From: Mytilus californianus
Taxonomy: Eukaryota
DNA: 64,000 nucleotides
Direction: 5' to 3'
Assembly: GCF_021869535.1 (NCBI RefSeq)
Contig: NW_026262604.1
Span: 1,488,001 to 1,552,000 of the forward strand
Of the stretch, positions 12,774-35,745 are shown in pieces; within the stretch, counting starts at the first letter, position 1, and every line of letters starts with the position of its first letter. A program made the translations under genes and the position numbers. The notes under the pieces are model-generated. The model saw only the letters and a program-made list of their open reading frames with translations, was not told the origin of the DNA and ran no database searches.

Positions 12774-12850
12774 CTGGATGTTATGAATGTACTGACCTTA
12801 GCATGTTCCATATGTTGACCTGACTGATCGCCGGTAATTGACCGTTATGG
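12774..12850 (-). other. Candidate non-coding 5' UTR exon of the P450
   Basis: Strong donor CAG|GTAAGT at 12774/12773 would pair with the acceptor at 11534-11533 just upstream of the ATG. The 5' boundary is a guess. Confidence 0.4.
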
Positions 12851-13280
12851 TGTAGTTTATAAAATAGTAGCTTTTTTAAAAAACTTGCCGTCTAATAGCT
12901 GATTATATTGAAAATTGTTTTTACCATTGTAGTTTCATCCATTTAGAATGGTCCTTTTCACAAATTACGTAGTGTTGAATTTTATAAGTGTGAAACGAAA
13001 TAAAACCAAATGAAACATAATGGACAGAAGGGAAAGAAATGGAGCAATCAAAGATAATAATAAAAAAAAAAAACAACAATGCCACGGAATTGTTTAGTGG
13101 TGACCTTTAAAGGCAAATAAAAAATGAATGAAAGATATCGAAAAATATATTCGCTCCATAAATAAATTGTTGTGTATACCAACCCATAAGCATACCACGT
13201 CAACATCAATAAACAAAGTTTGCTTCATATATATGTGAAAGTTTAACGGTCTGGGCTATTATGCATACAACCACTTTAAT

Positions 13281-13285
13281 TATAT

Positions 13286-13332
<47 letters not shown>

Positions 13333-14082
13333 CGTCAGTCCGTCATTCCGTCAGTCCGTCAGTCCTGTTTCTTGTCATCGCAACTCCTCTCAGACCACAC
13401 AACAGAATTTCACGAAACCTTTTTTAATAATAAGGACATACTATGTAGTTGTGCATATCGACAGGAAATTACGATTCAATTCTTTTTCTAGGAGTTACGC
13501 CCCTTTGAATTTATTTACTTTAATGTACTACTGCAACAGTTTGTCATCGCAACTCCTCTCAAACCACACAACAGAATTTCATGAAACTTTTTCAGATATA
13601 TAATAAGGACATACTACGTAGATGTGCATATCGACAGGAAATTACGATTCAATTTTTTTTCCAGGAGTTACGCCCCTTTGAACTTATTTGCCCAATATAC
13701 TACTGCAACCTTTTGTCATCGCAACTCCTCTCAAACCACACAACAGAATTTCATGAAACCTTTTCAGATAATAAGGACATACTACGTAGATGTGCATATC
13801 GACAGGAAATTACGATTCAATTTTTTTTCCAGGAGTTACGCCCCTTTGAACTTATTTTCCCAATATACTACTGCAACCTTTTGTCATCGCAACTCCTCTC
13901 AAACCACACAACAGAATTTCATGAAACTGTGTAGATAATAAGGACATACTATGTAGATGTGCATATTGACAGGAAATTATGATTCGATTTTTTTTTCTGA
14001 TACAATTTTTTTTCTTGATTTTATTTTATTTCTCCAATGACAATGTGGGGACGTGGGGTATGTGAGCGCGCTCACTAAGGTT
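13281..14082 (+). mobile_element. Non-autonomous Helentron/DINE-like (HINE) element with internal ~170-bp tandem repeats
   Basis: 5' palindrome TATATCCC.CGCAACGAGTTGCG.AGGGTATA, then a (GTCC/GTCA)n microsatellite. About 3.6 repeats starting 13372, 13541, 13713, 13881. 3' hairpin GTGAGCGCGCTCAC. Flanked by CTTTAATTA on both sides. Confidence 0.75.
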
Positions 14083-15299
14083 CTTTAATTAAGATATCCG
14101 ATTGTAGTACTAATTTATCGTATGATATGTAGAAAATTACGTCCGATCGGAACAAATCTTAGCTCAAGTACTAGTAGTTTCATGCATATCAGCCCTGATG
14201 CCTAATGGTGTCAGGGACTAAAACGAGAGGATTTGTTTTTTTTATATCAAAGAAAGCCTCTTATGATCGGATTAGGTCTTTCATACGATATGAAACAAAC
14301 GAGCATCGTTCGTTAAAGGATCTCTCATGCTTTATTACTTTCTGCAAAATTTGGTTCACATTCGCTGTGTAAATCGGCCTATTATCAGATTTGGGTTACT
14401 GGGTTGTATGGTCTGTTGTTTGACTGTTATAGTTGGACTTTACCAACAGCACACCTTACGGACTTAGGGGGATGAGTAAGGGCCTGAAAACAGTTATAAC
14501 AAACACAGTGAAGTAGGTTTTAGAACTTGTATCTTCAAAAGCGCATGAGAAAGTCATGTATAATTAATAACAATATAATAGTATATAATGCAAATAATAG
14601 AAACATCTAATTCATATAATTTTACAATATAATTGATCAATTAATATCTTTGGTACACACACTTTACGTTAATGCATGAGCATATGCATTTTAACTGACG
14701 AACACGGATGCTTATAATATTTCTTATAAATAAAAGCTTATTTAGCATTCAAATATATGAGCAAGATGCGGACTAAATCTTAAATGTATGAGCATAATGC
14801 AAGACCTAATATTTGAACCTAACGGAGCATAAAGAATGTGCTGAACAGCATAAAGTATTGAATGCATAATATCTAAACAATGGACATGAATAAACATGTT
14901 GAATTCTTTTATCTTTCGAATTATAAACATGGTAGAGCAAATATTGCGCTTGTAAAAACTTAAACTATATAAAACCTATAATCAATTCCGACAATGAGCA
15001 TTGGTTGAGAAATATTCGAAATCGAGACAAACTTATCATTACGAAACTAATCGTGAATATTCAAATAATATAAATATTAAACAATATAATATGAAATGGG
15101 GAAACTAGCTTTTTAAATATATATGCTTGCTTTGTATAAAAAATTCATAACTCGTAATAATATAGGACTAAACGACAAGAATAGTTTACGATAAATAATT
15201 ACTTATTAAATTAACCTTCACATGTGAAAATTACGCATAACGCGTTTATTACATAATCAACATCTTATCCTTGCGGAACTGACCTTAATTCTTATTAAG

Positions 15300-17556
15300 C
15301 AGAGGCGGATCCAGGGGGTGGTCACCCGGTGCCGGTGACCACCCCCTGGGTTTGCAAAAATGGTGCACCATGTACCCAAAAATTGTGAACCTTGAACATT
15401 TTGAAAAACAAATTCTTTGATTAAATCAATTTTTCTATCGTAATCACCAGTCATAAAGTTGTCATTACTTACCTTAAGACGAAATACATGTACCTTGACA
15501 TGTATGTTTACACAATGAACATGTCATCAACGATCGCTAATTACTTGGTCGATTTCTTCGATGTTAAGGTGTAAAAATGAAGAGACAGTCCTCAATCTTA
15601 GATGTTTTTAGCAGGTAATTCATACTTTTTACATTACGTTTATCTAAATTTTTAAAGTTTGTATAATAACTTTTCTCGACCAATAATGTTTTTTTACTGT
15701 GGTGCCAAAATTCAAATATAATTTTAAAGTTTTTAAGTCACATAAATATTCTATATTGAATACCCCCGTTTCTATCATCTGTTTGTCTAAAAGTTCCGAT
15801 CATTCCAATTTTTTAGTAACTTATACCCTCTTTCCTTCAGGAAACGCCACAAATCAGCCCCTCTGAAGTACCAACGACTTGTAATGGACCTAGCATTGAT
15901 ACGAACAAAAGTGATCAGATTAAATAAACAACCCCCGACTTACATATAAGTACAAACGACATTGGTTTTGTAAAGCAATCAACACGTATATTAACAAACG
16001 AAGAGAAATTTAATTTGATAAGAAATCATTTCAAACCCGGAATACACTATAGGGGGCCAGCTGAAGGACGCCTCCGGGTGCGGGAGTTTCTCGCTGCATT
16101 GAAGACCCATTGGTGGCCTTCGGCTGTTGTCTGCTCTATGGTCGGGTTGTTGTCTCTTTGACACATTCCCCATTTCCATTCTCAATTTTATAACTTTCAC
16201 ATAAAAATATATGCAGGAAAGAACAGACTGTTTCAGCTGAATTGACTGAATCGCTATGATCGGCTAGTGTACTCAGCTTCAAAAGAAGGAGCTTACTGCA
16301 TATACTATGCTCTGTTTGGGGTTGATAATTTGGGGACATTATCATGAAAATTCAAACCTGGAATACACTATAGGGGGCCAGCTGAAGGACGCCTCCGGGT
16401 GCGGGAGTTTCTCGCTGCATTGAAGACCCATTGGTGGCCTTCGGCTGTTGTCTGCTCAATGGTCGGGTTGTTGTCTCTTTGACACATTCCCCATTTCCAT
16501 TCTCAATTTTATAACTTTCACATAAAAATATATGCAGGAAAGAACAGACTGTTTCAGCTGAATTGACTGAATCGCTATGATGGGCTAGTGTACTCAGCTT
16601 CAAAAGAAGGAGCTTACTGCATATACTATGCTCTGTTAGGGGTTGATAATTTGGGGACATTATCATGCAAACAACTAACAGATATGGCACATGCAAGTAC
16701 AAGACTTAACGATCATTTCGGCCGTGATGAAAAATCATGTAAAAAAAGTAATACTGAAGCTAGAGCAAAAGCTCAACTTTTTCTTGACAACATTGAGCAA
16801 AGGACTACTGATATGCAAACATTTATTGATAGAGTAATGAATGAACGTATAAAAGCAAACAGAACTGTTTTGAAATCTATATGTAAGTGTGTTTTGCTTT
16901 GTGGCAAGCACAATCTTCCATTAAGGGGCCATAGGGATGATGCAAAACATGTTTCGGACAGAAGTTTCAATTCCGGGAATTTTCAAGCACTGATTGACTT
17001 CCGTGTAGAGTCTGGGGACTCTGTTCATAGAACCTTAAACCGTTTCTTGATTTTTATAACTCTGACTTGCCTAGTCCATGTAGAATTTCTTCGGAAGTAG
17101 ATAGGTGGTTGCATTTCTGGAAACATACCAAAGATACATTGCCAAAGTCAGCTGCTGAAACCATTATGAAATGCAACAAACTTGATTATCCGAACATTTA
17201 TGCTATTCTCAAAATTGTTTGCACAATGAGTGTAACAAGTTGTGAATGTGAGCGTTCGAATAGTGAGCTCGGGTTACTAAAAACATTTTTACGTGCAACA
17301 ATGGGCCAGGATCGACTAAATAGACTTGCACTGATGCACGTGCATTTCAATTTAGATTTAGGATTTGATGTGATCGTTGACATGTTTGCACGCAGACATC
17401 CAAGAAAAATGAAATTAGAATCAATTTTATAAATCATGTGTAACTTGTGTATTCTATAGTTGTAACTATTTTCATGATATCAATAAAAAAAATTGAATTT
17501 TAATTTAAGATTTCAAAAGGTGATCACCCCCTGACAAATTCCTGGATCCGCCCCTG
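15300..17556 (+). mobile_element. Internally deleted hAT (Tip100/Zaphod-like) DNA transposon
   Basis: TIR CAGAGGCGGATCCAGG / CCTGGATCCGCCCCTG. Transposase pieces: TTF-type finger (LVYSASKEGAYC), LPLRGHRDD...NSGNFQALIDFRVESGD, and the dimerisation domain YPNIYAILKI...CECERSNS...TMGQDRLNRLALMHVH. Middle of the transposase is missing. Confidence 0.9.
16030..16675. repeat. Tandem duplication (~320 bp x2) inside the hAT, each copy carrying a short interspersed-repeat insertion
   Basis: 16031-16350 is nearly identical to 16352-16670. The inserted ggggccagctgaaggacgcc...ccattctcaatttta is the inverse of 34296-34435. Confidence 0.85.
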
Positions 17557-20500
17557 TTAAGTATGAACAAGCGATAAGTTAAATTATCCTTTCCAACATG
17601 CGAGCGTAAAACTAAATTTTATAACGCGTTTAAAAATACCCTTGAGTACAGAAAGTTTGTGTAGAATAAACCAACCTTTTTTTTTAACATATATACATCT
17701 ATTTACACTGATCGAGAAACAACAATTTGATCTTAACTTCTTTACTTGCAGAACTCATAGATATTTAATTTCAACTTACTAAATGAAATGGAAACGAAAC
17801 TTTACGAAGTTTCATGATTCAATTGAATAAAATAATGAAAGAAACATATTAACTTTGAATAATTAAAATACTTGACTCACCTGAAAACGGTTATAACAAA
17901 CACAGTGAAGTAGGTTTTAGAACTTGTATCTTCAAAAGCGAATGAGAAAGTGCCACTTTTGAGACCGAAATTCACTTGTTCGATTTTGCGTTACTGTTTC
18001 AGGTTCGACCAATCAGATTCGTTAAACACCTGAGCCACTTAGTTACCCTGATAATTTGGGGTAAAAAGGGGCGTGGAAATACCTTTGCTGGACAGGACAA
18101 AGAACCCTAATTGACCAGGTTACCTAGACATATGTTGTTTACACAACAACTTGTTTGTGTTTAAAGGACAATAGACTTAGTAAAAAACATGTCTAATTGT
18201 GTCCACTTAGCTTCTCGCTAAACGGTTACATCCTGGTTTGCCCACTTTTAATTACCCCAATTATCAAATGGTTATATAAACAAAAAAGACAAAAGGTTTA
18301 TTGATTGGAAAATTGTATAGTCTGTTCCAGTTGTGTTGCTATTTAATATATAGATATAAGAATATAGATACATATATCTCTGTAAAAATTTATTGGATAA
18401 GTTCGTTTGCAATTGATGCATATTAAAATGTATTTTTTTCTTCCTATATTTGGTTGTGAAATTTTCATTGAATTGATTCTTTGAAGGAGATAACTGATGA
18501 AAATAAATAATAAATTGATTTTAATATATTTTTCAATAGCACTGAAACAACTAACATTGGCAATATTACATAAATATCATTAGCACTGAAATTTATCATT
18601 AATAATGCATTGAATGTAGTATGAATTCTATCGCCATCTTGGATAGTAAAATAGCAGAGAACAATAGGCATCATGATAGGTCCATATTTTTAATCAAGTC
18701 AGCAAAATGTAATGCAGGGATGCAATTAACTAATGCGATTTTTCATTTTAATGAACAAATTTATAAGATTTTAACTTATACATTGTGTAAATACTAATAT
18801 TTTTACAAACGTAGATTATTTTTGCTTGATTTTCAAAGTTTTTAAATTGGCATATTAAGGGTGGTAACTCTGGAAATAGTACATTTTCTAAAAGAATCTA
18901 CATGAAATTTTGCTATTTTATGTTTTAGCAAGAACAAACGAATGGTGACACTATCTTTTCTTTTGATATTCTGAAAGCATTTTCTAAAAGCTATCTTCTC
19001 GTATTTTATTTTACAATTCTATCATTAAGTTTATCTTCTACTCACATAATGATGCTTTTTCCTGTATAATCCATACACAATGTGTCATTTTGTCACAACC
19101 TGTAGCTTGAGAAAAAGGCATCATCTGTGTCTCATGAACACATTCCCCGTTTATTTTATTTAGCATGAAAAAGTTATAGATATCCTTTTTCTCAAATTTT
19201 AAATATTTATTTCACTCTAACCTAAACAAATTTGTTTTCATAAATTAAGATAAAGATGAATAGATAGAAATCTGAACACAATTATTGTCCTTTGTTAGTT
19301 TATAAATATTTTTTTTTTTTTATTTTATTTTATAATCCCATTTAAAATTGGTATGACATGTATCTCTTTTTTAATGTACTTATAGTTTTTATTATAATAT
19401 TTTGTCCTTTTTAAATCTCAATATTAATAATCTTATAAAATTTATCTCTTTTCTAATTATATTCATAGTTTTTGTTTTAATATTTTCCCTTTTTAAGTCT
19501 CACTATTGAATCAATTTTCAATCAAAAATATGTATTCTTTATAAGATTTTACAGGTGAATTACAGGTAAATAATATGCCTTAATTAAAGAAACAGACTTT
19601 AACTGTTAAAACAACAATTCCCCCTATGTTTATATATGCAAGTGATTAAAAGTGGGCAAACTAGGATGACACCCGCTAAACATCTTAAATTGATAAAAAT
19701 AATGCCAACAAAGAGAAAATCTAAAGTGACAAATGCCAAAGTAAATATCTGTTAAATTTGAACTTCTTATCTTAAATATATCGAAAATATAAAAATGATT
19801 TCCTTCAACAATAATGAACGAATATAAAACAAAAATACGTTTAATCAATACTGCAGCTTCGAAATGGACTTTAGATAAATAAAATATCTTAAACTTATTC
19901 CTTTTTGCTGAAAACTAAATTTTCACAAAAATATAAAATGAGGTCTAAAATGACTCCATGACACTATCATAATATTTTTTAAAATGCGTCTGTTACCGTG
20001 GTTCTGTGTTTAAAATCGAAAATACACTAATCTGCTTTTGAACTTAGAATGGCACTTAATGAATGTTATGAACATATTGCCAAATTTTTTTATTCCCCCC
20101 CCAAAAAAAAACTGTCGCAGGGGCCAAAAAATTTCATGATTTTGTCTCTCTGCACGGTTATATAAAAAATGTTCCTTGTTCAATTTTAAGGATGCTTTGT
20201 GCTTTTTGAATCATTCGGTCCATTCTATAATTTGAGGTAAAACACGTATACATTAAACTTTTATGTCCATATGACAAAATCAAAAGTTCAACACATCAAA
20301 CGAATGGATAAGAACTGTTATATTCCTGACTTGGTACAGACATTTTCTTATGTAGAAAATGGTGGATTAAACCTGGTTTTTATAGAGAAATTCGATCAGC
20401 TGACCATTATAAAAATATGTATCAATGCTTACTCTAGCGCACACAGCAGCACAGGTGTTTTTTCCGCTACGACATCAAAAAAACCTCTTTGAAGTCTGCT

Positions 20501-21959: not shown

Positions 21960-22395
21960 AATTTCAGGATAGTTGGATCAAAGAATTTTCTTGGTTGCAA
22001 TATGATCAAAATAAGGCAGTAAAGACTTGTAGGTTTTGCCAAACACTACCAAATATTGCTGGTTCAACTTCAACACAGAGATAAGGAAGGATCCGGAACC
22101 TGAACTACACCCACTGGCCCTCAGATGATGAAATTGAGGAATCAGAATGAACAACTTAAACTCACCTGTTTAATAAAATTAATATAATGTTGAATATAAA
22201 ATTTATGTTACAGTTGATTTATACAAACTATTTTCTACACTCGACAGCATAAAAGCACAGAACAAAAACTTGAACACTTTTATTTCACAAGGGTTGTTTA
22301 GCTGGAAAAAATGTAGACAACCTGAAATTATTTCCTGGCCTCTGAAATTTTGATTTGGCCACTAAATTTTCATGTCTGGTGGTCAGTTGGCAACT
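21960..22395 (+). pseudogene. hAT transposase N-terminal zinc-finger remnant
   Basis: SWIKEFSWLQYDQNKAVKTCRFCQTLPNIAGST, followed by ggccactaaatttt-type subterminal sequence. Confidence 0.45.
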
Positions 22396-22478
22396 CTATT
22401 TTAGAAGCTACTTTTAAGGATACTATTAGTCATGCTCTTCATTGTGACGACAAATAAAGATTGTAAAGTTAAGATAAC

Positions 22479-23210
22479 TGTCAGAATTAGAGTTTCTGTA
22501 TCTTTGGGATCTACGGTCCTCCAACCAGTTTTCAGAATTAGAGTTTCTGTATCTTTGGGATCTACGGTCCTCCAACCTGTTTTCAGAATTAGAGTTTCTG
22601 TATCTTTGGGATCTACGGTCCTCCAACCAGTTGTCAGAATTAGAGTTTCTGTATCTTTGGGATCTACGGTCCTCCAACCAGTTGTCAGAATTAGAGTTTC
22701 TGTATCTTTGGGATCTACGGTCCTCCAACCAGTTGTCAGAATTAGAGTTTCTGTATCTTTGGGATCTACGGTCCTCCAACCAGTTTTCAGAATTAGAGTT
22801 TCTGTATCTTTGGGATCTACGGTCCTCCAACCTGTTTTCAGAATTAGAGTTTCTGTATCTTTGGGATCTACGGTCCTCCAACCTGTTTTCAGAATTAGAG
22901 TTTCTGTATCTTTGGGATCTACGGTCCTCCAACCAGTTGTCAGAATTAGAGTTTCTGTATCTTTGGGATCTACGGTCCTCCAACCAGTTGTCAGAATTAG
23001 AGTTTCTGTATCTTTGGGATCTACGGTCCTCCAACCAGTTTTCAGAATTAGAGTTTCTGTATCTTTGGGATCTACGGTCCTCCAACCTGTTTTCAGAATT
23101 AGAGTTTCTGTATCTTTGGGATCTACGGTCCTCCAACCTGTTTTCAGAATTAGAGTTTCTGTATCTTTGGGATCTACGGTCCTCCAACCAGTTGTCAGAA
23201 TTAGAGTTTC
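22479..23210 (-). repeat. Tandem array of 14 x 51-bp units made of the LTR U5 end + PBS + leader
   Basis: Unit AGAAACTCTAATTCTGA(C/A)AAC(T/A)GGTTGGAGGACCGTAGATCCCAAAGATAC matches 23686-23732. The array ends exactly at TGACA (22479). Confidence 0.92.
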
Positions 23211-23269
23211 GGTGTATTTGCTTGGAATTGGTCTTATACCAATGGGATCTATACCTTGACGACTTGTGA

Positions 23270-23645
23270 TGTCTTTAATCGATGTTAACGATACTTTATA
23301 CTTATTGTCCAAGACATTAAACCATTCCCTGGCTATGCCTGTCAGGTGGAACGGGAGAATCAAGATGGCTGACACCTCAGGCATGCCCTGTAATGTTACA
23401 AATGCCATAAACATGGCCCAGAATTCTGTGGCATTGCCCCTACCACTAAACGACTCGAAATTCACATGGTATCTGTGACCATGGTTACTAGCAAAACCTG
23501 GTGGTGGTGGTATTATGTGTGGCCCAGTGTTCACAGTGTTAGATGAGGAACCTGCTGTGGCTGTTGGTAATGGGGCTGTGTTGACTATCTCTTCCGGTTG
23601 TTCATTGTCTGTGGCATTAGTGGTAGCATTATTTGGTGCAGGCAT
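23270..23645 (-). pseudogene. gag: Ty3/Gypsy gag N-terminal fragment
   Basis: MPAPNN...FESFSGRGNATEFWAMFMAFVTLQG...ILPFHLTGIAREWFNVL...SLTSIKD is a capsid-like motif. It begins ~70 nt after the LTR end/PBS and is truncated by a jump back into U5. Confidence 0.8.
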
Positions 23646-23713
23646 ATTGATGTTCTTTGATCTCAACCAGTACATACGTTAATTCTTTGGGATCTTTCAG
23701 TCCTCCAACCAGT

Positions 23714-25608
23714 TGTCAGAATTAGAGTTTCTGTGTGTTTGCTTGGAATTGGTCTTATACCAATGGGATCTATACCTTGACGACTTGTGATGTCTGGAGC
23801 CAAGGCCTGAAACAATATTCAATAAAACTTGAAATAGTTTTATGTCTTTATTTCCAAAGAGCGCATGTAAAAGTCTAATTATAATAGCAGTTATAATATA
23901 AAATGACAAACAATATTCATAAGTATAAATCAATATAATAATGCAAGTATAATTCCATTAGATAATGCAATAGACCTATCATAATTAAATATTTCATAAA
24001 TATTCTGAAACATGAACATAATGTGTATCGCAATACTTAATGTATGAGCAACATCTCATTTCTTTTGCATAAATATTCTAAACATTCAAATATAAACATG
24101 GTAGAGCATTTTTAAGGTATTTGGTTAAACTTTATTCTAAACACTGAGAATTAAATAAAGGAATAATATAAACGTCTTTCTTATGAAACTCCAATTCAAA
24201 CAATGAGGTTACTTATCTAACCATATCTCCGTTAAGGGGGAATAACTCTTTTTTTAATCTGTTAAGGAGGAATAACTCTTTTTTAATCTGTTAAGGGGTA
24301 ATAACTCTTTACACAATAAAAAAAAGGGGGGGGGGGGCAATTGTAGAATAGAAACTTTTCTATCATGAAATCTTGTTACGCAATGAAATATATATAATAC
24401 TTTGTTGTGGGGAACTAGCTATAGAATATGTCTTACATGTATACTTGCTAAAAATAAGTTTACGCAATAACGTGCTATTTATAGAAAAATAACAAACCAT
24501 GCGTTTGCTGACAATAACATGTCAAATAAACTGCACATCAAGAAATCATGCCTAAAAGGCTTTCGAATTATAAAACCTTACCATTGAAAACATTATAACT
24601 TCAATGCAATAGTGAATTTAAGGTGAATTATTATTTCTTATTTCTTGTCAGTGCGACAAAACAGGCGGATGTTATAAATAACTATAAAAACATAAAATAA
24701 GTATACCATTTTCCGATCAGAACCAAAAACTTTTCTTTAAAAAACACATTATTTACAACTATTTACAATTATAGCATAAAGAAAATATCTTGATAATTAA
24801 CTTCTTTATAAAGATAATAAAAGATGAAAACTCTTATTAAATAAAATAACTATGAAAGTGCTGAAGATTTTACAAAAGGAAAATAAACCTATTTCTATTC
24901 AAAAAGAATAAAGCATTAGCAAATTAATAATTTTATCAGAAGTTACTTTTAGGTTATGAAAACCTTTAAACAAAATGCTTAAGATTATATTTAACAAAAT
25001 AAAATTAACTTTGCTTACCTGAAACAATATTCAATAAAACTTGAAATAGTTTTATGTCTTTATTTCCAAAGAGCGCATGTAAAAGTGGCGCTTTTTGGAA
25101 ATAACTTTTTAGATTCGAATTTGTGGACTGTTTCAGGTTTGTCCAATCAAAATTAACATTTAATCAAAAACCATGACAACTTTAGTCTAATTGACAGAAA
25201 ATGGGTAGGGTCATAAGTGACGCTTAAGACTAAAAAATATCTTAATTACTTATGTAATCCCGCTATCAATGTTTACTCTATACCCTATTTGAGCCGGATA
25301 TTAACAATAGAAACAATCCGAAAAAAACCTTATTACATGTCGGCTTCACTTTAAAAATCATATCTGTCAACACATTCTGACCATTGTCCGATATCTTCTT
25401 ACGTAATCTATATACAACACAATAAGGCTTACTAAAAGGAAATATGTTTGTGTGAAAATCAAAACTAAAGCTATTAAAATGTCTGTCCAGAATTGAAATA
25501 AAATGTTTAACTAAAATAATTTGCTTTAAACTTAGAACTTTTCCAATTTTTACTGAAATTAAGAATTTCACAAAAATAATAAAATCTGTTCAAAATGATA
25601 CCATGACA
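23714..25608 (-). mobile_element. Long terminal repeat (LTR1, 1895 bp) of the env-bearing Gypsy element
   Basis: Termini TGTCA...TGACA. Preceded by a PPT (AAGTAAGGGGGAG, ~25610-25622) and followed by AC-TGGTTGGAGG (PBS-like) and gag. Confidence 0.85.
25080..25155 (-). promoter_or_regulatory. Putative LTR core promoter (ATTGG/CCAAT box, conserved AACCTGAAACAGT, Inr-like CCACTTT with +1 at 25086)
   Basis: The same motif order and spacing occur at 17945-18015 in the divergent LTR. The TSS is inferred, not observed. Confidence 0.55.
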
Positions 25609-26084
25609 ACTCCCCCTTACTTCAGTTGATTTCGACCCGAAATCTTGACATATTCCTGTAAAATACTAAGTAAAGTAGGGGTTAGTCAATTACACATACA
25701 TGATAACTGTGTATTGTTCCATACATACAAAAGTAAACATACAAAATATATATACATACCTAAATATTCAATAATTGATCATAAACACAGGTCCTGAGTT
25801 ACAAGGTCTTTAATTCAAAACAATAAATGCATCTAACTATTTCTGAAAAAAGTTGTCTAAAAAAATACCTTATCACTTAAAACAATTTGGAAAATATTCA
25901 AGAGGTTGAGGATTCAGCACTACTTATGGAATAGAACTAATTATTCGGTGAAATGAAATATATTAGACAAAAATTACTGCAGAAATACAGTTTAATTTAA
26001 GATGTTAAAATTCATTATTAAAATCTAATAGTTGAACAATTAAAAAGAAATCATAAGAACAATTTGCTTTTAAAATAAAATTGA

Positions 26085-28274
26085 TTATTCTAAATGTGGA
26101 AATAAGGAAACAGAAGTTTGATTTGAAGCTTGTTGCACTTTTTGAATAGTTCGTGGTGGATTCAAAACTGAAGCAAACCCTTGATGTGTAACTAATACAT
26201 AAGAATCAAATGTCTGAGCTAATATTTTGTTAATTCTATGCCTTTTAAATACATTAAGATCAATTGTAGTAGGAATGTTCACAGTCTTGTTGGTAAGCTT
26301 GTTTGTAATAACAAATGATGAAATAATAACATATAATTTACTCTGATGAAAGGATGAAATTGATATATCATCTACAGAAGGTATACTGTCGTAATATGAT
26401 GGACACACAGATAAGCTAAGCAATGGTACTGTAACACAGTCAGCACCTGATGTAATCTCTAAGTAAATGGTGGTGCATTTGGACTTTCTTGATCGATACA
26501 AAAAACAAATCAGTACAGATAAAAATATGAATACAATTACACTCAAAATCACTGAGGCATGTAGCCAAGAAAATTGAGAAGCAAAAAATGTCTCTAGTTC
26601 TGATGCACTTGTAGTAGGTGGTGTGAGTTTCTTATATATAAATGATGGTATTTCTTGAGATTTTACTTTTGAGACTTGTTGTATGATGTGGAGGATAATT
26701 GCTTATCACTAAAATATTCTTGCAACAATGCTAAATTTACAGGATATTGAACTGACACTTCTTGTGTGTTGTTGTAACATTGGACTAATCTTGGTGATAA
26801 ATATAATGATTTTGTGGAAAGTGAACACTTGCATGGTAAACTGACAACACAATCTTTGCATCCTGGAAGGAGATTTTGCTTGTTGTGACAATTAATAGCA
26901 AGCTTATCACTTTGATACACCAATACTGATGTGGAGCTCAATTCAATGATGTCATGTGTTAAATGATTTTCCAAAAATCTGAAATTGCACAGGCTTTTGA
27001 CCTGCTTCTTGTCATTGTTGAATAGTGCAATGGTGCATTGTTTAACATGCGATGGGACAAGTGCAATATTGAAACTGCATGTGATAACACTTACATGCTG
27101 GCAATTAGTTAATTGGTTAGAAGATAAGGGGAGATAATAATCATGCTGGTGGGTAAGAGCAAGAAAATCTGGTAAATCAAGCAGTTTAGTTGCATGCTTC
27201 AGAGTGTTATTTACTGGAACAGGTAGAGAAATTACTTTAAAAAGCTGAAGAGGTTGTGAATGTGATGAAACTGGAAATCTGAGTGTTAGGTATAGGATGG
27301 AGTGGTTACGCATAAACATAAAGTTACGGTTAGTATAGTAGAAGGAAGGATGTAACTGTGTTAGATAGAATCCTGGATACGATTTTGTTGATATTCCTTG
27401 AACCTTATGGAGTGCATGTGTTAGGGTTTGTTTTAGCAATAATAGTGGTGAGACTCTGCCCATGACAAGGCTTTGCACTGCGGCTTGGAACTGGTCCAAA
27501 TTTCTTCGTAATATATTGCCTGTATTAGTGAGGTTAATGAGTATTTGGAAAATATTAAACATGGATTGCTGTAAGGTAACTAATGACAAGTTCATTGAAT
27601 GAGCCAATGTGGCTATCTCTTTTGAATTGATTTGAATTCCAGACATCAGATTGGTTGTCCTATTGTCCATTACTGACATATAGGATGATAAGTGGTCACC
27701 ATGCTGGTGTAGAACGTCAGATAATAATTCAGTTCTCTTATTGAGTGCGTTTATGTGTCTAGCAAGTAAATTTACATCACTCATTGTTGATGTACCAAAA
27801 AGACCTTTAGCAAGTGAGCCAATGAATGGTAAAAATGAACGAATATTTCGTTTTGATGACAAAATAGTACTGTGAGGAATTAAAGTATGAATGGCTTTAA
27901 TTGTATCTAATAAGTGCATTTCTGTAGTTTTATGTAAATAACTTATAAAATTTACATTGCGTTAAATGTATTACAATCATGAACATGTGTTTGTCTCTGA
28001 CATAAAGGTAACTCTTCTGATAAATGAATGTTATGGGGAATTTGAACCTTAAATGTATGAAGCCATGATTCTTTGGCTAAAACAGGTTTGCCTCTTCTTT
28101 AAAGATGACCCCATAATTAATTATTTGGATTATGTCTTTTTCTACAGTATAATCAGCACCAACTTGAACAAAACACAGGACCACCATTAGAAAGTACATC
28201 AGCCCATGCCAACTAGCCACGAATTTACCTACAAATATATTAAACAAGGGAAAAATTAGATGTGATGAAATCAA
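26085..28274 (-). pseudogene. env: Envelope-like (class I, baculovirus-F/errantivirus-type) glycoprotein ORF, frameshifted
   Basis: Hydrophobic signal (LMYFLMVVLCFVQVGA), NYGVIF, basic cleavage site KRNIR|S followed by fusion-peptide-like SFLPFIGSLAKGLFGT, heptad region and Cys-rich ectodomain. TM segment VILSVIVFIFLSVLICFLY then RSRK. Breaks near 28077, 27950 and 26660. Lies between integrase and the PPT. Confidence 0.8.
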
Positions 28275-28688
28275 GGTGAAAGTATGCAGGCCTTACATAC
28301 AATCTAGCACTATGGATCAACAGAGAATCTGTTTAGGTTTAATTCAACACATCAAATTTCTACCTTACAAAAAAAAAATAAAACCTAAAAGTCTGCCGGC
28401 ATGGCTAGCTAGTTAGCAGTGAATTGAATAATACTGTCAATGGGACTATCCTTCGATGTCAAGTAACTTGGAACTGATAATACATTTTACTGAGTACTGG
28501 AACTGAGTACGGACTTTAAGATAATGAGTACTAATGAGTTCACTTATTGATGAGTACTAACTTGTACGATTACATACTTGTGCAATATAAAGTGATATGA
28601 ACTAAAATCTCAAATCATTAAACTTAATTTGAATGATAAAAAACTTGTCTTAAATAACGCATGAATACTACATGTACTATGAGCAAAA

Positions 28689-30790
28689 CTAGTTTTTTAC
28701 TCTTTTGAAGAAAGATTTCTTTCTTTTGCCTTTCTGGGTAAATCTCAGATTTATTTCCTCTAACATGGGAGGGTCAAAACTAGTATCTGGTTCCCATGTG
28801 CGTGTCTTATCAAGCCATTCTACTCTCATGAACCTTTTACCATTGCAAAATTTACCTCTTTTAATTTGATGAAAATTAAATGTTTGATTATCAATACGAG
28901 GCTGATTTGTTTGATTTTCTATAACATTTTCTTGATTAACATTATTTTCAGGTTGTAAGTTAACATTTGGCAGTTCATCAAGAGGTTCTGAATTATCTGC
29001 AGTGTTTTCAGGTTCCTCTTGCACTTGTGTTTGTGCTTGAGGAGCTACATTTGCATTTTGATCTGGTGCATTGTTTTGGTGTTGTTGTACCTCAAACCGT
29101 TTGCGATGAATATTTGGGTCATAGTAGCGCCTAAGATTTGTGGCATTTATCAATGATTTCAATTCTTTATTATTAGATATTTCTTTCAATTTGTATGTGA
29201 AGTTTTGACCTTTTTCCATAATGCGATAAGGACCAGCATGTTTGTCATGTAATTTGCGAGACTGACCTTTAGGGACTTTATTTGTAGTAATCAAAACTTG
29301 GTCTCCAACAGAAAAATCAGGAATATTTGATTTAAGGTCATGTCTTTCTTTATCTTTTTCTTTTTGTTGCGCATCTTTTTGTTTTGCAATTTCATGCGCA
29401 ATTTTTAAATTTGCCAAAAAGCCTTCTATATAATCTTTGACATCTTGACATAAATTGTCTTTTGGTTCTAATGCTACATCAAAAGGAAGTCGCATTTCTT
29501 CTCCAAACATCATATAGAAGGGTGAATATCCTGTTGTATTGCAGGATGGTGATTTTCTATATGCCATCATTATAAAAGGGAGAAGGGTAGGCCAATTTGA
29601 CTGGTCCTTATCACAATATGCTCTTAAACATGCTGCTAATGTGCTATTTTGACGTTCAACAGTACCATTTGTATTTGCATGATATCAACTTGAATGGTGT
29701 TGTTTAACCTAGAAAACTTCACAAATTGCTTTGATAACCTTTGTCATGAACGATTGACCTCTATCACTAAATAAAATTTTAGGACTGCCAAAACGGGCAA
29801 AAACTTCTGAGCATAATATGGTTGCTACCTCTTTTGCTGTTTGTGTTTTCATAGGGAAAGCTTCTGTCCAACGAGTGAAAGAATCAACTACTACTAAGAC
29901 ATGTTCAAAACCTTGTGGTGTTTTTGACAAAGGACCTAGTATATCAACATGCCAACGATGAAATCTACCAACATGAGGCATTGGAGACAAAGGTGGTTTG
30001 TTGGGGTTGTAATTTCTTTTGGCACGTTGACACCTATCGCAAGTTTTTATGTATTGATTTACATTTGCATGCATTTTTGGCCAATAATATTTTTCCATCA
30101 TAGAAGAATAGACCTTATCAGCACCTAAGCGGCCTCCGCCTAGTAAGGAGTCATGATATGAGTGGAGAGCCTCTTCTCTAAGACAAGTTGGCAATGCTAT
30201 CTGTTTAATTTGTCTTAGTTCCTTAGGTAACTTCCTACATCTTCTCTGATATAAATAATATAAAAATACCATTAGAAATAGAGTAATACGGGCTTTCAGA
30301 TACAATTGCACGTCTGAGTTTCTCATCCTCAGGAAGTTCCCTATCTTGCAGATATTTAATGATATCAGAAAAATCAGGACATTGTTTTTGTCTTTCAAAC
30401 AGAGAGATAGGATTAGCTAAGTTTTCAGGAAGTTGATCAGCTTCTAGGGCAGATATTATAGGACAGTTTTCAGGAGATTCATCATCATAGTAAAAGGTAG
30501 TGTAAGTTTGCCAACCATTTGGTAGGCAGTCAGATTCAGAATCTGGCTCAGAATCTTGTCTAGCGTTTGTTACAGATCGTATAGCCGGTGCCTTATCATA
30601 TGGCCTACGGCTTAAACAGTCTGCAACTACATTGCGTTTGCCTGGTCTATGAATGATATCATAGTCTAAGTCTTGTAACTTTAGTGCCCAACGTTCTAGT
30701 CTCCTTGATAATTTGGCAGTTTTTAACCAAGTGAGTGCTCTGTGATCAGTTACTATAGTGAAGTGAGAGTTAGCCAAATAAGGACGGTAG
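28689..30790 (-). pseudogene. pol: Gypsy pol: RNase H C-terminus, tether and integrase
   Basis: HFTIVTDHRALTWL...RWALKLQDLDYDIIHRPGKRNVVADCLSR. Integrase zinc-binding region ...YYWPKM...CDRCQ, core WHVDILGPL...VVVDSFTRW...SDRGQSF, TGYSPF and GPY motif. Several frameshifts. Confidence 0.93.
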
Positions 30791-32939
30791 CACTACAAAA
30801 GTCAAAAAGTCTGAAAAGACCAGTTTTTGTCTGAATTTGCATGAATTTTTACTCGACATTCTTAATTTGTCTGAATAATTTAAAAAAATTCTTGACATAG
30901 TATGAATTTGTCTAATAAGGTTCTTGATTTTTCTTGACAAGTGTCTTGACAGTATGAACATTGTCTTAAAATTTCTCGACACTTCCTGTATCATCTGATA
31001 AGAGTCTGGATTAGTCTCGACCAATTCTTGACTGTCTTAAATTTGTCTCGATCTGTCTTGACATATTCTTGACATTCTTACTAATGTCTGAATATGTCTC
31101 GACATATTCTTGACATTCTAAATAATGTCTGAATATGTCTCAACACATTCTTGACAGTCTTAAAAATGTCTTGACACTATCTCAACAGTATAAATTTCGC
31201 CTGAAATGTGAACAGACTTATTCTGCACTGTTTATGACATTCTATTGCTGTTATATACTCCTTTTTATTATGGCTTAACTAAACTTTGAAGAATCAAGGA
31301 TTAATTTGGTATATATAGTAAGATACCCTTTTGGTGCAACTAAGTTGTAATACCCTGAATAATCCCCCATATAGTTTAATTTTGATTTATTTTTATTAAA
31401 CATTTAAGTAATTGTTTTCACTTGGAATATAAGTAGAAGGTATTGACAAACAGCATTTAGATTTTTGCCGTTCGCAAAACTGCCAGTCAAATTTGCTTTA
31501 CTAAAATAGGTGTCTTGTATCTCTTTTGGACCCCACAATTCATCTTTTGGGTTTGTGTAGCTAAAAAAAGAGGGGGGGGGGGGGTGGGGGTGGGGGTGGG
31601 GCTTTCGTTTAGGTCAAAGAATTTGTTCCCATCTTGATTCAAAAACCTTATTCATTTTTTAGAACAACCCAAAAACATTTTTTATTCAAATTTGAGTGTT
31701 GAATTTTATAATTTTTTATCAAAAATAAATATTAATAAATAATAAAAAAACTCCTTCCTGAAAAGAAAAAAATGTTTAGATCTATATTATGCATGTTTGT
31801 TTGAGAACCATTTCTATAGAAATCATTGATGGGACCCATTATAAATACATTTTTTTTATTATTCCTGGAGTAGATAATAATTTTCTCTTAATCTTTGGGA
31901 ATTATTCAATTTGTTTTTATGTTAAAATAATTAACTTCATAATTTTGATGAGGAATATCCATTTCAATTCAATTTGTTTTCATCAAAATGATGATTTTCA
32001 TTTTCATCTATCAACAAACTTTTGTAGTGGCATGGTCGGTCAACTGATAAGTTGTATGGCTGATTACAGGTAAAGTTATAACTTCTATTTGACAGTTGCG
32101 TGTACTCTGGGGTGTGGAATACCTTAATTTTATGGGGAACATCCTGTCCATGTGTAATACTTGATATATTCCAACAGATGACATTACACAAATTTTTCTT
32201 CTGTTAAATGAATGATTTGTATATCATCATAATTTGCTATTTATATAAACCACATTTTTGTATAATAATTATTTACCATATCAACATTGAATATTATGAA
32301 TGTAGAATGAAATATGTCTACAGTATAATTGGTTTGAATCATTTAATTTATAAGATTTAGGAATCAAAATTTGTAATTATTTAAAAACCCACATTGAAAT
32401 TGTTTTATATCAACACAACCACATTTGAATTATTTTATACTTTAGATTTCATAGCCATATTTGCATTTGTAAAAATATTTATATACCCAAATTTTTAATT
32501 ATTTTACATGCCCAACTTTTATTTTTGTTGTAAAGAAGTGTAACTTGAAACAACAGTATATCATATAAAGAGAAATAAAGATTAAAGTTATATCATGAAT
32601 ATTGGTCATGATTTGTAAAACTCAGAACTGTCAAGTAAATTTAAGACACGATTCAAAATGTTCAGAATATGTCAAGCCATACTGAGAAAAAATATGAATG
32701 TCGAGAATATGTCGAGAAATTTCAAGACAGTTTTCAAATGTCAAGAATTTGTCAAGAAATTTTAAGACCATATTCAGAATGTCGAGAATATGTCGAGTAA
32801 ATTTCATACAAATTTAATATAAATGAGAATTTGTCAAGAAAAATTAAGACACAAGTCATACTTTTGGAGAATGTCGAGTAAAAGTTCATGCAAATTAAGA
32901 CAAAAACTGGTCTTTTCAGACTTTTAGACTTCTGTAGTG
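30791..32939. mobile_element. Non-autonomous CACTA (CMC-EnSpm) element inserted in RNase H
   Basis: Termini CACTACA...TGTAGTG with ~70-bp imperfect TIRs. 3-bp TSD TAG (30788-30790, 32940-32942). Many CTTGACA/CTCGACA subterminal repeats, inverted between the two ends. Excision restores ...GVESYRPYLANSHF. Confidence 0.92.
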
Positions 32940-34295
32940 TAGGATTCAACGCCTCTAATTATGGCTAAACACTCTTTTTCAGAAGTATAGTACTTTTTCT
33001 CAGCATCACTCAGCGCTTTACCACCATAAGCGACAACATACTCTCTATTTTGATCATCTTTCTGTCCCAAAACATAGCCTATTGCTTGATCATATGCATC
33101 ACAAGTTAAAATAAAAGACCTATTTGGATCTGGGTAAGATAGAATTGGTGAAGAAAGTAAAGCCTTTTTCATTGTTTCAAATGCTTGTTGACATTTAGGA
33201 GTCCAGTTAAAAGGTGCATTTTTGCGCAGCAATGCTGTCAAAGGAGACACAATATCTGAATGACCTTTAATAAAACGACGGTAGTAGTTAGCCATACCTA
33301 AAAAAATCTGACCTGTTTAACTGTTTTTGGAACAGGGAACTCACTAACTGCACTCGTTTTTTCTAAGTCAACCTGAACTCCATTTTTGGAAATGATGTGG
33401 CCTAAAAATTTGACTTGCTTAACGGCAAAATTACATTTTGTTGGCTGTAGACGTAAATTTGCCTGTTTTAACCTATCAAAAACTTGAGTAAGGTGTTCAA
33501 GATGTTCTTCAAAAGTATTGCTGAATATTAAGATGTCATCTATGTAGACTAACAAAAATTTCCAATTTAAACCTCTAAATATTTGAGTCATGAGACATTG
33601 AAAAGAAGTGGCTGCATTCATTAAGCCATAACTAAGGCGATTCCATTCATAAGCAACAGATTGTGTGACAAATGCACTTTTATGTTTTGTCTCTTCATCA
33701 AGTGGAATTTGCCAAAACGAACTTTTAAGGTCTAAATTTGTAAGGTAAAGAGGTTTTGCTTCTCCTAATGTGTCAAAAACACTTTCAATATGGGGTAAAG
33801 GAAAGTTCATAGGTACTGTGACCTTGTTGACCTTGCGATAATCTATCGCTAGGCGCCATGTACCTGTATTTTTCTTAGGAATCATTACTACTGGTGACAA
33901 CCAATCAGAATTAGACTCCTCTATAATATTATGTTTCAATAAATCTTGAATTTGGCTTTCCATTTCCCTTTTAACTTGAGGCGACTTTCTATAAAAATGT
34001 TGTTTTACAGGTCGTGCACCAGGGACAGATACAATTTTGTGTTTGTATACGTCTGTTTCACCTAATTCTGTTAAATTTGTGGCAAAGCTTGTTCTGTTTT
34101 CTTTCAAAAATGATTTTAACTTTGCTTTCTCTATTTCTGTTAAGTCAGATTGTGTTAAATCAAATTCTAGGTCAGATTCTGAGACTTTACTTGGTGTGTT
34201 TACTGATGAAACAGATGGAGAGCTTTCATCAAAGTTCTGTATGAGCTCAGTATTGACTTTTTCTACTTTTGCATTTTCTTGTGTGCTCTTAACCT
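32940..34295 (-). pseudogene. pol: Gypsy pol: reverse transcriptase and RNase H N-terminus
   Basis: WLSPVVMIPKK...WRLAIDYRKVN, LDLKSSFWQIPL, YGLMNA, YIDDILIFS, FLGHIIS. RNase H part [18 protein letters not shown]...SEKECLAI. Frameshift near 33297. Confidence 0.95.
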
Positions 34296-35279
34296 TAAAA
34301 TTGAGAATGGAAATGGGGAATTTGTCAAAGAGACAACAACCCGACAATAGAGCAGACAACAGCCGAAGGCCACCAATGGGTCTTCAATGCAGCGAGAAAA
34401 TCCCGCACCCGGAGGCGTCCTTCAGCTAGCCCCTAAACAAATATGTATACTAGTTCAGTGATAATGGACGTCATACTAAACTCCAAATTATACACAAGAA
34501 ACTAAAATTAAAAATGATACAAGACTAACAAAGGCCAGAGGCTCCTGACTTGGGACAGGCGCAAAAATGCGGCGGGGTTAAACATGTTTTTTGAGATCTC
34601 AACCCTCCCTCTATACCTCTAGCCAATGTAGAAAAAACAAACGCACAACAGTACGCACAGTAAAACTGAGTTTAAGAGAAGTCCGAGTCCGATGTCAGAA
34701 TAGGAAACAAAAGAACATAAACAAAATGACAATACATAAATAACAACAGACTACTAGCAGTTACTGACATGCCACCTCCAGACCTCAATTAAACTGATTG
34801 AAAGATTAGGTCTTCATCATATGAACATCAGGCACAATCCCTCCTGTTAGGGGTTTAGTATTATACCATCATAAAATATATGAGAAGAACATAACCCGTG
34901 TAATGCCAACAACTGGTTTTAGAATAAATATGTTTAATTCCGATGCAAAGACCCTATAAGTGAATCAATATTAAAGCTAAAATATGCAATCTTTAATGAC
35001 CTGACAACAGTATCGTAACTATATCCCTTCTTAATAAGTCTGTTTAAAGGTTTTGTTAGCTTTTGAGGTGAATACTGACATTTTTGTGCTTTGTAAAGAA
35101 TATCACCATACAAGCTTGGATGTGAAATACTCGAACGTATAAGATGTCTGCATGTTGAGTTGTATTTACGAATGATGTCCTTATACCGATGATAAAATTT
35201 AGTAAATGTTTTGATTAGTTTATGATATCGAAAACCCTTGTGTAATAATTTTTCAGTAATACATAAATTTCTCTCGCTA
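34296..35279 (-). mobile_element. ~980-bp interspersed repeat (SINE-like) inserted into pol between protease and RT
   Basis: Contains the CTCCTGACTTGGGACAGGC...GCGGGGTTAAACATG core of the abundant family. The pol sequence resumes on both sides (DKNVR...RAHK/AKVEKVN). Possible imperfect TSD AAGATT/AAGGTT. Confidence 0.75.
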
Positions 35280-35745
35280 AAATCTTACATTTTTGTCAGT
35301 TGGGTTAAGTAAACTTATATATGCTTTACCATTTTTAACAGTAACCAATGACTTTGCTGCTATTATGTTTAGATGCTCTATATTTGGAAGTGGCTCTAAA
35401 AGTACAGTTGAACCTGGTTGTTGATGTGAAACAGAGACACTAATTAAAGTTTGAGAAAATTTTGGTATTGTTACTGCCTTAAGAGTTCTTACTAAACCTT
35501 CACTTATACTAAGTTTACTTATTGTAGTAACTGTGTGATTTTCTACAATTTCTAAAGTATTGTTGTCAAAATTTAATTTTGCTTTGTTGTTTTTCAAAAA
35601 ATCAACACCTAGTATTAAAGAGTGGTGTAATGGTGGTAAAACATGTACTACAGTTTTGAATTTTCGATCTCCTATTTTAATTAGAATGTCTAATTTACCC
35701 AAAACTTTAACATGTTCACCATTAACAGCTATTACTTTAACATCT
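35277..35745 (-). pseudogene. pol: Gypsy aspartic protease, C-terminal half
   Basis: VKVIAVNGEHVKVLGKLDI...HSLILGVDFLKNNKAKLNFDNNTL. The catalytic DTG, gag and 5' LTR are absent (truncated at ~35745). Confidence 0.85.

Follow-up and report, generated by a model that had tools for sequence, protein, structure and literature searches.

How could an LTR retroelement maintain an intron inside its own LTR, when anything spliced out of the 5′ leader should be lost during reverse transcription? We addressed this question at an LTR of Mytilus californianus that carries two copies of a short segment around an intron-like spacer. The LTR lies in a 64,000-nt stretch of contig NW_026262604.1 (assembly GCF_021869535.1, positions 1,488,001 to 1,552,000), referred to here as the window, with coordinates counted from its first base. 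An earlier note, made from the sequence alone, had proposed that the repeat is a possible self-regenerating, spliced LTR. We asked whether the repeat exists, whether it recurs in related elements and which mode of replication could maintain it.

Anatomy of the LTR

The repeat described in the earlier note is real and lies exactly where it had been placed. On the minus strand, 25086-25018 and 23874-23806 are identical at 69 of 69 positions and are spaced 1212 nt start to start. A self-BLAST gave E = 4.5e-30 and no other such repeat in the LTR. The 69th shared base is the G that would be both the donor G and the first base of U5, so that the proximal (X) and distal (X′) copies proper are 68 nt. 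The features of the window are as follows (a slash marks a predicted boundary).

23714-25608, minus strand: LTR copy 1 (TGTCATGG...TCTGACA), 1895 bp, the 3′ LTR of a truncated upstream copy, directly followed by a primer-binding-site (PBS)-like sequence and a gag stump.
25610-25623, minus strand: polypurine tract (GAAGTAAGGGGGAG), one base before the LTR.
25087-25608, minus strand: segment A, the U3-like promoter part, 522 nt.
25143-25148, minus strand: GATTGG (inverted CCAAT) box, 57 nt upstream of X; a TATA-like CTAAAAAG lies about 26 nt upstream of X.
25019-25086, minus strand: X, the proximal R-like copy, 68 nt; it starts at an Inr-like CC/ACTTT (..GCC/ACTTTT), holds AATAAA at 25064-25059 and ends TTTCAG.
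23807-25018, minus strand: predicted GT-AG intron, 1212 nt, made of spacer B (25018-23875) plus X′; donor CAG/GTAAGC with the GT at 25018-25017, acceptor TTGTTTCAG/GCC with the AG at 23808-23807.
23807-23874, minus strand: X′, the distal R-like copy, identical to X, with AATAAA at 23852-23847; proposed 3′ R and poly(A) site of the genomic RNA.
23714-23806, minus strand: segment C, U5, 93 nt, ending ..TCTGACA at 23714, followed by AC and TGGTTGGAGGAC.. from 23711.
23694-23711, minus strand: TGG-type PBS-like sequence TGGTTGGAGGACTGAAAG, 2 nt after the LTR.
23271-23678, minus strand: gag stump, the first 136 of 344 codons, 98% identical to the gag of L008 (a relative introduced below).
22328-23274, minus strand: second partial U5+PBS copy (23274-23164) running into about 14 tandem 51-bp units, each made of the last ~20 nt of U5, the PBS and ~11 nt of leader.
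28695-35735, minus strand: pol of the upstream copy (protease, RT, RNase H, integrase in gypsy order), broken and lacking its first ~79 codons.
26088-27919, minus strand: env of the upstream copy, broken; relatives carry the baculovirus-F-type domain.
14383-19963, minus strand: LTR copy 2, a diverged solo LTR of a related family with the same anatomy, flanked by the 4-bp duplication ATAG (19967-19964 and 14382-14379).
17881-17951, minus strand: X of copy 2, 71 nt, followed by CAG/GTGAGT, with a GATTGG box upstream.
14484-14554, minus strand: X′ of copy 2, 69/71 identical to its own X, ending TTTTCAG/G and followed by about 101 nt of U5.
15304-17554: hAT-type DNA transposon remnant nested in spacer B of copy 2, with terminal inverted repeats, a hAT dimerisation domain on the plus strand and a 321-bp internal tandem duplication.

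The limits of LTR copy 1 were confirmed by the LTR pair of L008 and the 5′ LTR of L003, which align end to end with it. In one respect the context differs from that assumed in the earlier note, which took this LTR for a 5′ LTR in front of gag. Here it is preceded by env and a polypurine tract and is shared between a 5′-truncated upstream copy and a gag stump. The 424-aa ORF 22401-23675 is not a full gag, as only codons 1-136 are gag and the rest is a translation of the 51-bp array, from which its Pfam hits (BppL_N, DUF7302) also come.

The element is an envelope-carrying Ty3/gypsy element. Pfam hits to RVT_1, RT_RNaseH_2/RT_RNaseH, Integrase_H2C2, rve and SH3_Tf2-1 follow in this order on the minus strand, a protease motif is seen in an ORF, and L008 has a single 1380-aa pol frame. 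A search with the window env ORF, which itself had no Pfam hit, found 52 relatives, several of which are named ‘Envelope fusion protein’ or carry PF12259, and a transmembrane-like stretch lies in the second env piece. LTRs in direct orientation with TGTCA..TGACA ends are paired in L008, L004 and L005, and 4-bp target duplications are GTAC in L003 and ATAG around copy 2, whereas the window itself holds one shared and one solo LTR rather than a pair. PBS-like 18-mers beginning with TGG lie 0-2 nt after the 5′ LTRs (in L003, L008 and L005 in the arrangement of copy 1) and a purine tract precedes the 3′ LTRs (in L008 the same tract), but a tRNA search of the window returned no gene with which to compare them. 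No Rfam hit was found in 13000-37000. A sigma-70 promoter and terminator scan, which does not apply to a eukaryote, gave only chance-level matches (15 found, 13.6 expected).

The layout recurs in related elements

We found the A-X-B-X′-C layout in four lineages and four species: window copy 1 with the related sequences L003, L008 and L009; window copy 2; L004 (M. coruscus); and L005 (Pinctada). LTR pairs with this layout occur in M. californianus, M. edulis, M. coruscus and Pinctada. Segment lengths are stable (A 495-522 nt, X 67-71, B 577-1208, C about 87-113), although A, B and C no longer align between lineages. Within spacer B, only two short 20-21-nt matches of uncertain meaning were found between lineages, neither extending further. 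GT follows X in 4 of 4 repeat-bearing lineages (CAG/GTAAGC, CAG/GTGAGT, CAG/GTTAGT and TAG/GTAACT or GTAAAT) and follows the X-equivalent in 0 of 2 plain-LTR outgroups. X′ always ends in a T-rich tract plus YAG (..TTTCAG/ or ..TTTTAG/). Thus, consensus-like splice signals are conserved, although splicing itself is inferred from sequence alone.

The 5′ limit of the repeat falls at an Inr-like CA, 26-30 nt after a TATA or TATA-like box and about 57 nt after GATTGG. In an alignment of seven sequences the TGG of this box is invariant and the other three positions are near-invariant, and L004 has a canonical TATAAAAAG 30 nt before X. The CCAAT box and the TATA box at the canonical distance are found only upstream of X. 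However, AT-rich, TATA-like strings also precede X′ in every lineage, so that a second start site cannot be excluded from sequence alone.

The earlier note had set two comparative predictions, and both held. Both LTRs of young full-length relatives keep X, the spacer and X′ (LTR identity 99.7% in L008, 97.5% in L005 and 97.7% in L004), as does the solo LTR with its target-site duplication, indicating that the whole A-X-B-X′-C block is the replicated unit. Furthermore, X and X′ co-evolve within a copy: they are 97-100% identical within a lineage but only 54-72% between lineages, and L008 carries a private A-to-T change in both. Relatives mostly lacking the second repeat, which would have refuted the proposal, were not seen down to 47% Env identity. 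Two more distant relatives (Env 35-39%), L012 and L013, have a plain LTR in which GATTGG..AATAAA..YAG runs straight into U5, an arrangement collinear with the proposed spliced leader.

A possible mode of replication

The interpretation offered in the earlier note is thus partly supported, in its comparative aspects. What our analysis establishes is the anatomy, its conservation and the lockstep evolution of X and X′, whereas the start site, the splicing, the poly(A) site, the silencing of the proximal signal by U1 and the direction of the jump are inferred. In the explanation that we favour with moderate confidence, A holds the promoter and transcription would start at the first base of X. X carries a complete poly(A) signal, but as a 5′ splice site follows at once, the signal would be passed over, as U1 binding does in some retroviruses; such suppression of an LTR poly(A) site by U1 at a nearby donor has precedent in foamy viruses (PMC3694450). 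In the 5′ LTR the intron (B plus X′) would be spliced out, giving an RNA that begins X-U5-PBS-gag and removing the unprotected signal in X′. In the 3′ LTR the RNA would be cleaved within X′, upstream of or at its AG, so that the intron there cannot be spliced and the RNA ends ...A-X-B-X′. Minus-strand strong-stop DNA, the complement of X-U5, would then anneal to the terminal X′ and continue through B, X and A, and the usual plus-strand steps would give A-X-B-X′-C at both ends. In effect R would be X/X′, the ‘U3’ of the RNA would be A-X-B, the R at the RNA 5′ end would be supplied by a leader exon spliced onto U5, and X′ would be overwritten by X at every cycle. Reasoning through the standard two-jump scheme, we found that models with unspliced RNA, or with a start at X′, either lose B or never copy X into X′. 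Of the simple models compared, only the one proposed in the earlier note keeps the spacer and also overwrites X′ with X.

Several points weigh against this model. Logan and ENA contigs carrying family gag or env (L002, L007, L009, L010 and L011) gave no junction information, as they are collinear with genomic DNA or begin inside U5 and break where the 51-bp U5-PBS unit is repeated in the genome. Moreover, because X equals X′, a spliced X-U5 read is indistinguishable from genomic X′-U5 in most copies; X and X′ do differ by diagnostic bases in, for example, window copy 2 (2 differences), the L004 5′ LTR and the L008 3′ LTR. Packaging a spliced RNA as the genome is unusual for retroelements, and nothing in the sequence explains why splicing should win in the 5′ LTR and cleavage in the 3′ LTR. 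Window copy 2 has no canonical AATAAA in X or X′. No intron-less LTR of these families, the expected by-product of a jump to the proximal X, was seen among the only about 10 LTRs sampled. X has no significant RNA structure, with folding z-scores from -1.3 to +0.3 in four lineages, and a conserved hairpin in X is rejected. With regard to Tf1-type self-priming, the first bases of X are, by inspection only, not complementary to the PBS.

Alternative explanations

The main alternative, which we consider possible but unlikely, is that the genomic RNA is unspliced and R is the whole X-B-X′ block (about 0.7-1.3 kb) with an in-register first jump, the splice signals serving only to make subgenomic gag or env mRNAs, or X′ serving only as a poly(A) site not silenced by a donor. 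This would keep B and X′ in both LTRs, as observed, without packaging of spliced RNA, and since errantivirus env mRNAs are spliced from a leader exon upstream of gag (PMC12992720), the donor after X may exist for env. However, in-register transfer copies X to X and X′ to X′, and the two would then diverge like any other LTR sequence, whereas they remain 97-100% identical within lineages that differ by 28-46% from each other and share the private substitution in L008. The active poly(A) signal of X′ would also sit 0.6-1.2 kb into every unspliced 5′ end. We regard as improbable that X′ is the true R, with its own start site at the end of B, and X with its donor an upstream alternative first exon or the relic of an old LTR-in-LTR arrangement. 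The TATA-like strings before X′ would be compatible with this, and a start at X′ with a jump to the distal X′ would also regenerate the full LTR, but the positions of the CCAAT and TATA boxes argue against it, the 3′ end of B shows no similarity to A, and neither X nor X′ would ever be recopied from the other, leaving the concerted evolution unexplained.

Homogenisation without replication, by gene conversion in the host genome or by selection on shared signals, seems very unlikely. Both copies need the same signals (AATAAA, T-rich tract), and X changes somewhat less than A and B within the family (0-1.5% against about 5%), but selection on motifs does not keep 68 of 68 bases identical in each lineage while letting the whole segment drift to 55-70% identity between lineages, and gene conversion of a 68-nt tract would have to act independently in every insertion. 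A one-off duplication or an assembly artefact, which a single window could not exclude, is refuted by the same layout in a second LTR of the window and in five further assemblies or contigs from four species.

Implications

Textbook reverse transcription predicts that anything spliced out of the 5′ leader is lost from the progeny, and for that reason LTRs are assumed to be intron-free and to hold a single R. The layout described here appears to evade that rule by design, persisting across mussels and a pearl oyster while all the surrounding sequence turns over. In its boldest form, which we consider slightly more likely than not, a clade of bivalve envelope-carrying Ty3/gypsy elements uses a spliced RNA, with a 68-nt leader exon (R) joined to U5, as its replicating genome, the LTR intron surviving because it is copied from the unspliced 3′ end, where cleavage within the second R copy destroys the acceptor. 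This would be a new solution to the problem of ignoring a poly(A) site at the 5′ end and using it at the 3′ end, a third way besides cap proximity or RNA structure and U1 silencing alone, and would show that introns can persist inside LTRs. It would also provide a case in which the packaged genome is a spliced RNA, and a built-in ‘molecular clock reset’ between X and X′ that can be read directly from genome sequences. On a practical matter, LTR finders and U3/R/U5 predictors will misplace R in these families, and gene predictors may call the LTR intron as host gene structure.

Relation to known retroelements

Full-text literature searches found no description of a duplicated R around an LTR intron. 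Spliceosomal introns inside retrotransposon sequence are known from two settings: spliced LTR-contained transcripts of maize LTR retrotransposons, for which a preprint claims the first evidence for introns within LTRs (bioRxiv 10.64898/2026.05.08.723830), and introns in the internal region of Ogre and EVADE (PMC12786077). The maize transcripts, however, are non-coding RNAs confined to the LTR, and no duplicated R and no link to LTR regeneration is described. The element belongs with the envelope-carrying Ty3/gypsy elements, namely the insect errantiviruses (PMC12992720) and the ‘ancient errantiviruses’ reported in Mollusca and other phyla (PMC13524379), with which it shares gag, pol in gypsy order and an F-type env; in that group env is expressed from a spliced RNA with a short leader exon. 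Neither paper describes an intron or an R duplication inside the LTR, and the second has no occurrence of ‘splic’ and one irrelevant ‘intron’.

In foamy viruses the major splice donor lies inside R and U1 silences the 5′ LTR poly(A) site (PMC3694450). Deltaretroviruses also have a donor in R. As predicted for the mussel LTR, a donor inside the LTR next to the poly(A) signal gives a ready way to pass over the signal at the 5′ end, but in those viruses the acceptor lies outside the LTR, the genome is the unspliced RNA and R is not duplicated, whereas here the predicted donor lies downstream of AATAAA and the predicted acceptor lies in the same LTR. DIRS, Ngaro and PAT-like elements, with split or internal complementary repeats, likewise regenerate terminal repeats from an extra internal copy of terminal sequence, but they use a tyrosine recombinase and make no target duplication, whereas here there is a DDE integrase (rve) and 4-bp duplications, so that a DIRS-like element is rejected.

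With the canonical U3-R-U5 LTR and two-jump reverse transcription of retroviruses and LTR retrotransposons, the element shares TG..CA termini, a PBS-like sequence 2 nt after the 5′ LTR, a polypurine tract before the 3′ LTR, a 4-bp target duplication and, in the proposed model, a short repeat that starts at the transcription start, holds the poly(A) signal and mediates the first jump. The outgroups L012 and L013 fit the canonical form, with a single R per LTR and the expected start at the U3/R border. In the four repeat-bearing lineages, by contrast, the R-like segment occurs twice in each LTR, 0.6-1.2 kb apart, with a predicted splice donor following the first copy and a predicted acceptor ending the second, and the proposed start site lies far upstream of the functional U3/R border.

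The duplicated segment and its junctions

On the minus strand, window positions 25086-25018 and 23874-23806 are identical at 69 of 69 positions and lie 1212 nt apart, and aligning the window against itself by BLAST gives this match an E-value of 4.5e-30. The earlier note's observation of a perfect direct repeat within the LTR is thus confirmed, and the junctions that it described were all found as stated. Here, the proximal copy is named X and the distal copy X', and the LTR is divided into an upstream promoter-like part (A), X, a spacer (B), X' and U5 (C). The window (assembly GCA_021869535.1) contains no N and has a G+C content of 33%. Read on the minus strand, the features are:

25148-25143, minus strand, GATTGG box
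25086, minus strand, start of X, at CC|ACTTTT
25064-25059, minus strand, AATAAA in X
25018, minus strand, last position of the proximal repeat; X ends CAG|GTAAGC
23852-23847, minus strand, AATAAA in X'
23874-23806, minus strand, distal repeat; X' ends TTGTTTCAG|GCC
23714, minus strand, end of the 93 nt of U5 that follow X', at TCTGACA
directly after the LTR, minus strand, AC and TGGTTGGAGGACTGAAAG, a PBS-like sequence

Structure of the element in the window

Upstream of the LTR we found Pfam-supported RT, RNase H, integrase and Tf2-type SH3 domains in gypsy order, together with a protease-like ORF. These are followed by two ORFs of 418 and 155 aa, whose relatives are named 'Envelope fusion protein' or carry the baculovirus F domain PF12259, and by a purine tract at 25623-25610. 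So 25608-23714 is the 3' LTR of an envelope-carrying Ty3/gypsy element, a kind of element that has recently been reported in Mollusca (PMC13524379).

We counted the breaks in the upstream copy against the uninterrupted frames of L008, a relative at a second M. californianus locus. The gag gene is absent, as are the first ~79 codons of the pol frame. The pol frame is in five pieces, with two large insertions, four frame changes between pieces (two of them at the insertions) and two stop codons, while env is in two pieces, with one frame-changing indel, and is about 0.3 kb shorter than in L008. A 166/334-bp tandem repeat at 36004-36739 abuts the truncated 5' end of the element, and the region 36677-51000 holds about eight tandem copies of a 1.9-kb unit, 87-100% identical, each with a 131-aa minus-strand ORF without a Pfam hit.

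Downstream of the LTR come the putative PBS and the first 136 of 344 gag codons, followed by a second partial, 112-nt copy of U5 and PBS (23164-23274) and an array (22328-23341) of about 14 tandem 51-bp units, each made of the last ~20 nt of U5, the PBS and ~11 nt at the start of the leader. Together they create a spurious ORF of 424 aa, whereas L008 and L009, a contig of the same family, have normal gag at this point. The order across 23271-35735 is therefore pol-env-LTR-PBS-gag stump, that is a circularly permuted or tandem-like remnant and not a 5' LTR in front of an intact gag. About 0.87 kb of gag is missing between the two ends, which would fit a remnant of a one-LTR circle or of a tandem array broken in gag.

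A second LTR of the same layout

A diverged solo LTR lies at 19963-14383, flanked by the 4-bp duplication ATAG, and has the same anatomy:

upstream of X, a GATTGG box
17951-17881, minus strand, X (71 nt), followed by CAG|GTGAGT
between X and X', a long spacer holding a nested hAT-type remnant (15304-17554)
14554-14484, minus strand, X', ending TTTTCAG|G

The X and X' of this copy 2 differ at 2 of 71 positions, but are only about 71% identical to X of the first LTR (copy 1). The nested hAT-type transposon remnant has terminal inverted repeats and contains a 321-bp tandem duplication at 16030-16671. Just beyond the solo LTR, at 13372-13995, lies a 168-bp tandem repeat of 3.7 copies.

Related elements in other assemblies

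Using the env and gag proteins of the window as queries we reached the following loci, all of which are host-genome copies of this element's family:

L003 (M. edulis): same family; the 5' LTR is followed by a PBS-like sequence and gag, and the target duplication is GTAC
L008 (M. californianus, second locus, 8101-20479): full length, LTRs 99.7% identical, three uninterrupted long frames of 344, 1380 and 717 codons
L009 to L011: contigs of the same family
L004 (M. coruscus): Env 52% identical, LTR pair 97.7% identical
L005 (Pinctada imbricata): Env 47% identical, LTR pair 97.5% identical
L012 and L013 (ENA assemblies): Env 39% and 35% identical

Every LTR of L003, L004, L005 and L008 has the layout A-X-B-X'-C. 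Segment lengths are stable across lineages, although A, B and C give no BLAST alignment between lineages apart from the LTR start and the promoter boxes.

Segment lengths across lineages (nt)
A: 495-522
X: 67-71
B: 577-1208
C: about 87-113

In all four lineages with the repeat GT follows X (GTAAGC, GTGAGT, GTTAGT, GTAACT/GTAAAT) and X' ends in a T-rich tract plus YAG. L004 has a canonical TATAAAAAG 30 nt before X, and the window family has CTAAAAAG about 26 nt before X. By contrast, L012 and L013 have shorter LTRs (0.7-1.0 kb) with no internal repeat, in which GATTGG..AATAAA..YAG runs straight into U5 with no GT. This matches an A-X-C form, collinear with the proposed spliced leader, and is probably the older state.

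The individual loci showed further features. No matching target-site duplication was found around L008. The gag and pol frames are separated by a single in-frame stop in L008 (9998-15172), and also in L005 (4205-9421) and L009 (935-5998), which suggests read-through expression of pol. Between its two LTRs the M. coruscus element (L004 8014-12816) lacks gag and about two thirds of pol but keeps a full env frame, and is thus an internally deleted derivative that still has the full A-X-B-X'-C LTRs. The very first base or bases of X and X' vary among the four copies of this element (L004 6688-6700, 7840-7850, 13310-13325 and 14466-14475), with C or G before ACTGA and a 4-nt duplication before X of the 3' LTR. 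If X starts at the cap site, an extra G at X' could be a copied cap, but with only one element this is speculation. In L005, the 51 nt that precede the 3' LTR, including the purine tract, are repeated exactly just after it (12708-12758 and 14100-14150), followed by a weakly LTR-start-like sequence.

Concerted evolution of X and X'

If the duplication were old and the two copies independent, X and X' within a copy should differ at least as much as X does between lineages, but this is not what we observed. L008 also carries a private substitution just before AATAAA in X, in X' of the 5' LTR and in X' of the 3' LTR. Within the window family X changes less than A and B, 0-1.5% against about 5%, although this effect is modest.

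Mean pairwise identity of X and X' sequences (%)
Within the window family (45 pairs): 98.9
Within copy 2: 97.2
Within L004: 97.1
Within L005: 100
Between lineages: 54.5-70.7

A possible mechanism of LTR regeneration

To ask how such a layout could be maintained, we worked four models through the standard two-jump scheme of reverse transcription. With a start at X, no splicing and a 3' end at X, spacer B would be kept only if the jump follows full copying, X' would never be refreshed and its poly(A) signal would sit in the 5' end. With a start at X, no splicing and a 3' end at X' (a long R), B would be kept, but X would copy to X and X' to X'. With a start at X', B would be lost, or kept if the jump is to the distal X', and X and X' would stay independent. 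Only a spliced X-U5 leader combined with a 3' end in X', the model put forward in the earlier note, would both keep B and rewrite X' from X in every cycle. While the layout, its conservation and the concerted evolution of X and X' are shown by the sequences, the start site, the splicing, the poly(A) site and the strand transfer are inferred.

This model would also give each signal a role. The donor could silence the poly(A) signal in X, as happens in foamy viruses (PMC3694450), splicing would remove the unprotected signal of X' at the 5' end, and cleavage within X' at the 3' end would remove or precede the AG, so that the intron there is retained. We consider the model moderately likely, but it rests on sequence alone, without RNA evidence, and it requires a spliced RNA as the genome. 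In addition, no sequence feature explains why the two ends should be processed differently, copy 2 has no AATAAA, and no intron-less by-products appeared among the roughly 10 LTRs seen. The interpretation given in the earlier note is thus supported only in part, by comparative evidence.

Comparison with known systems

The element belongs to the envelope-carrying Ty3/gypsy elements, which are already known, but its LTR layout departs from the single R that defines canonical LTRs. Full-text literature searches found no description of this layout, and it is the layout that we regard as new. Among the nearest functional parallels, foamy viruses have a splice donor in R, but no acceptor in the LTR and no duplicated R. 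Deltaretroviruses also have a splice donor in R, but are not known to have an acceptor in the LTR or a duplicated R. Maize LTRs produce spliced transcripts confined to the LTR (bioRxiv 10.64898/2026.05.08.723830, a 2026 preprint), but those are non-coding RNAs with no described link to LTR regeneration. DIRS-type elements regenerate their ends from an internal copy, but use a tyrosine recombinase and not a DDE integrase.
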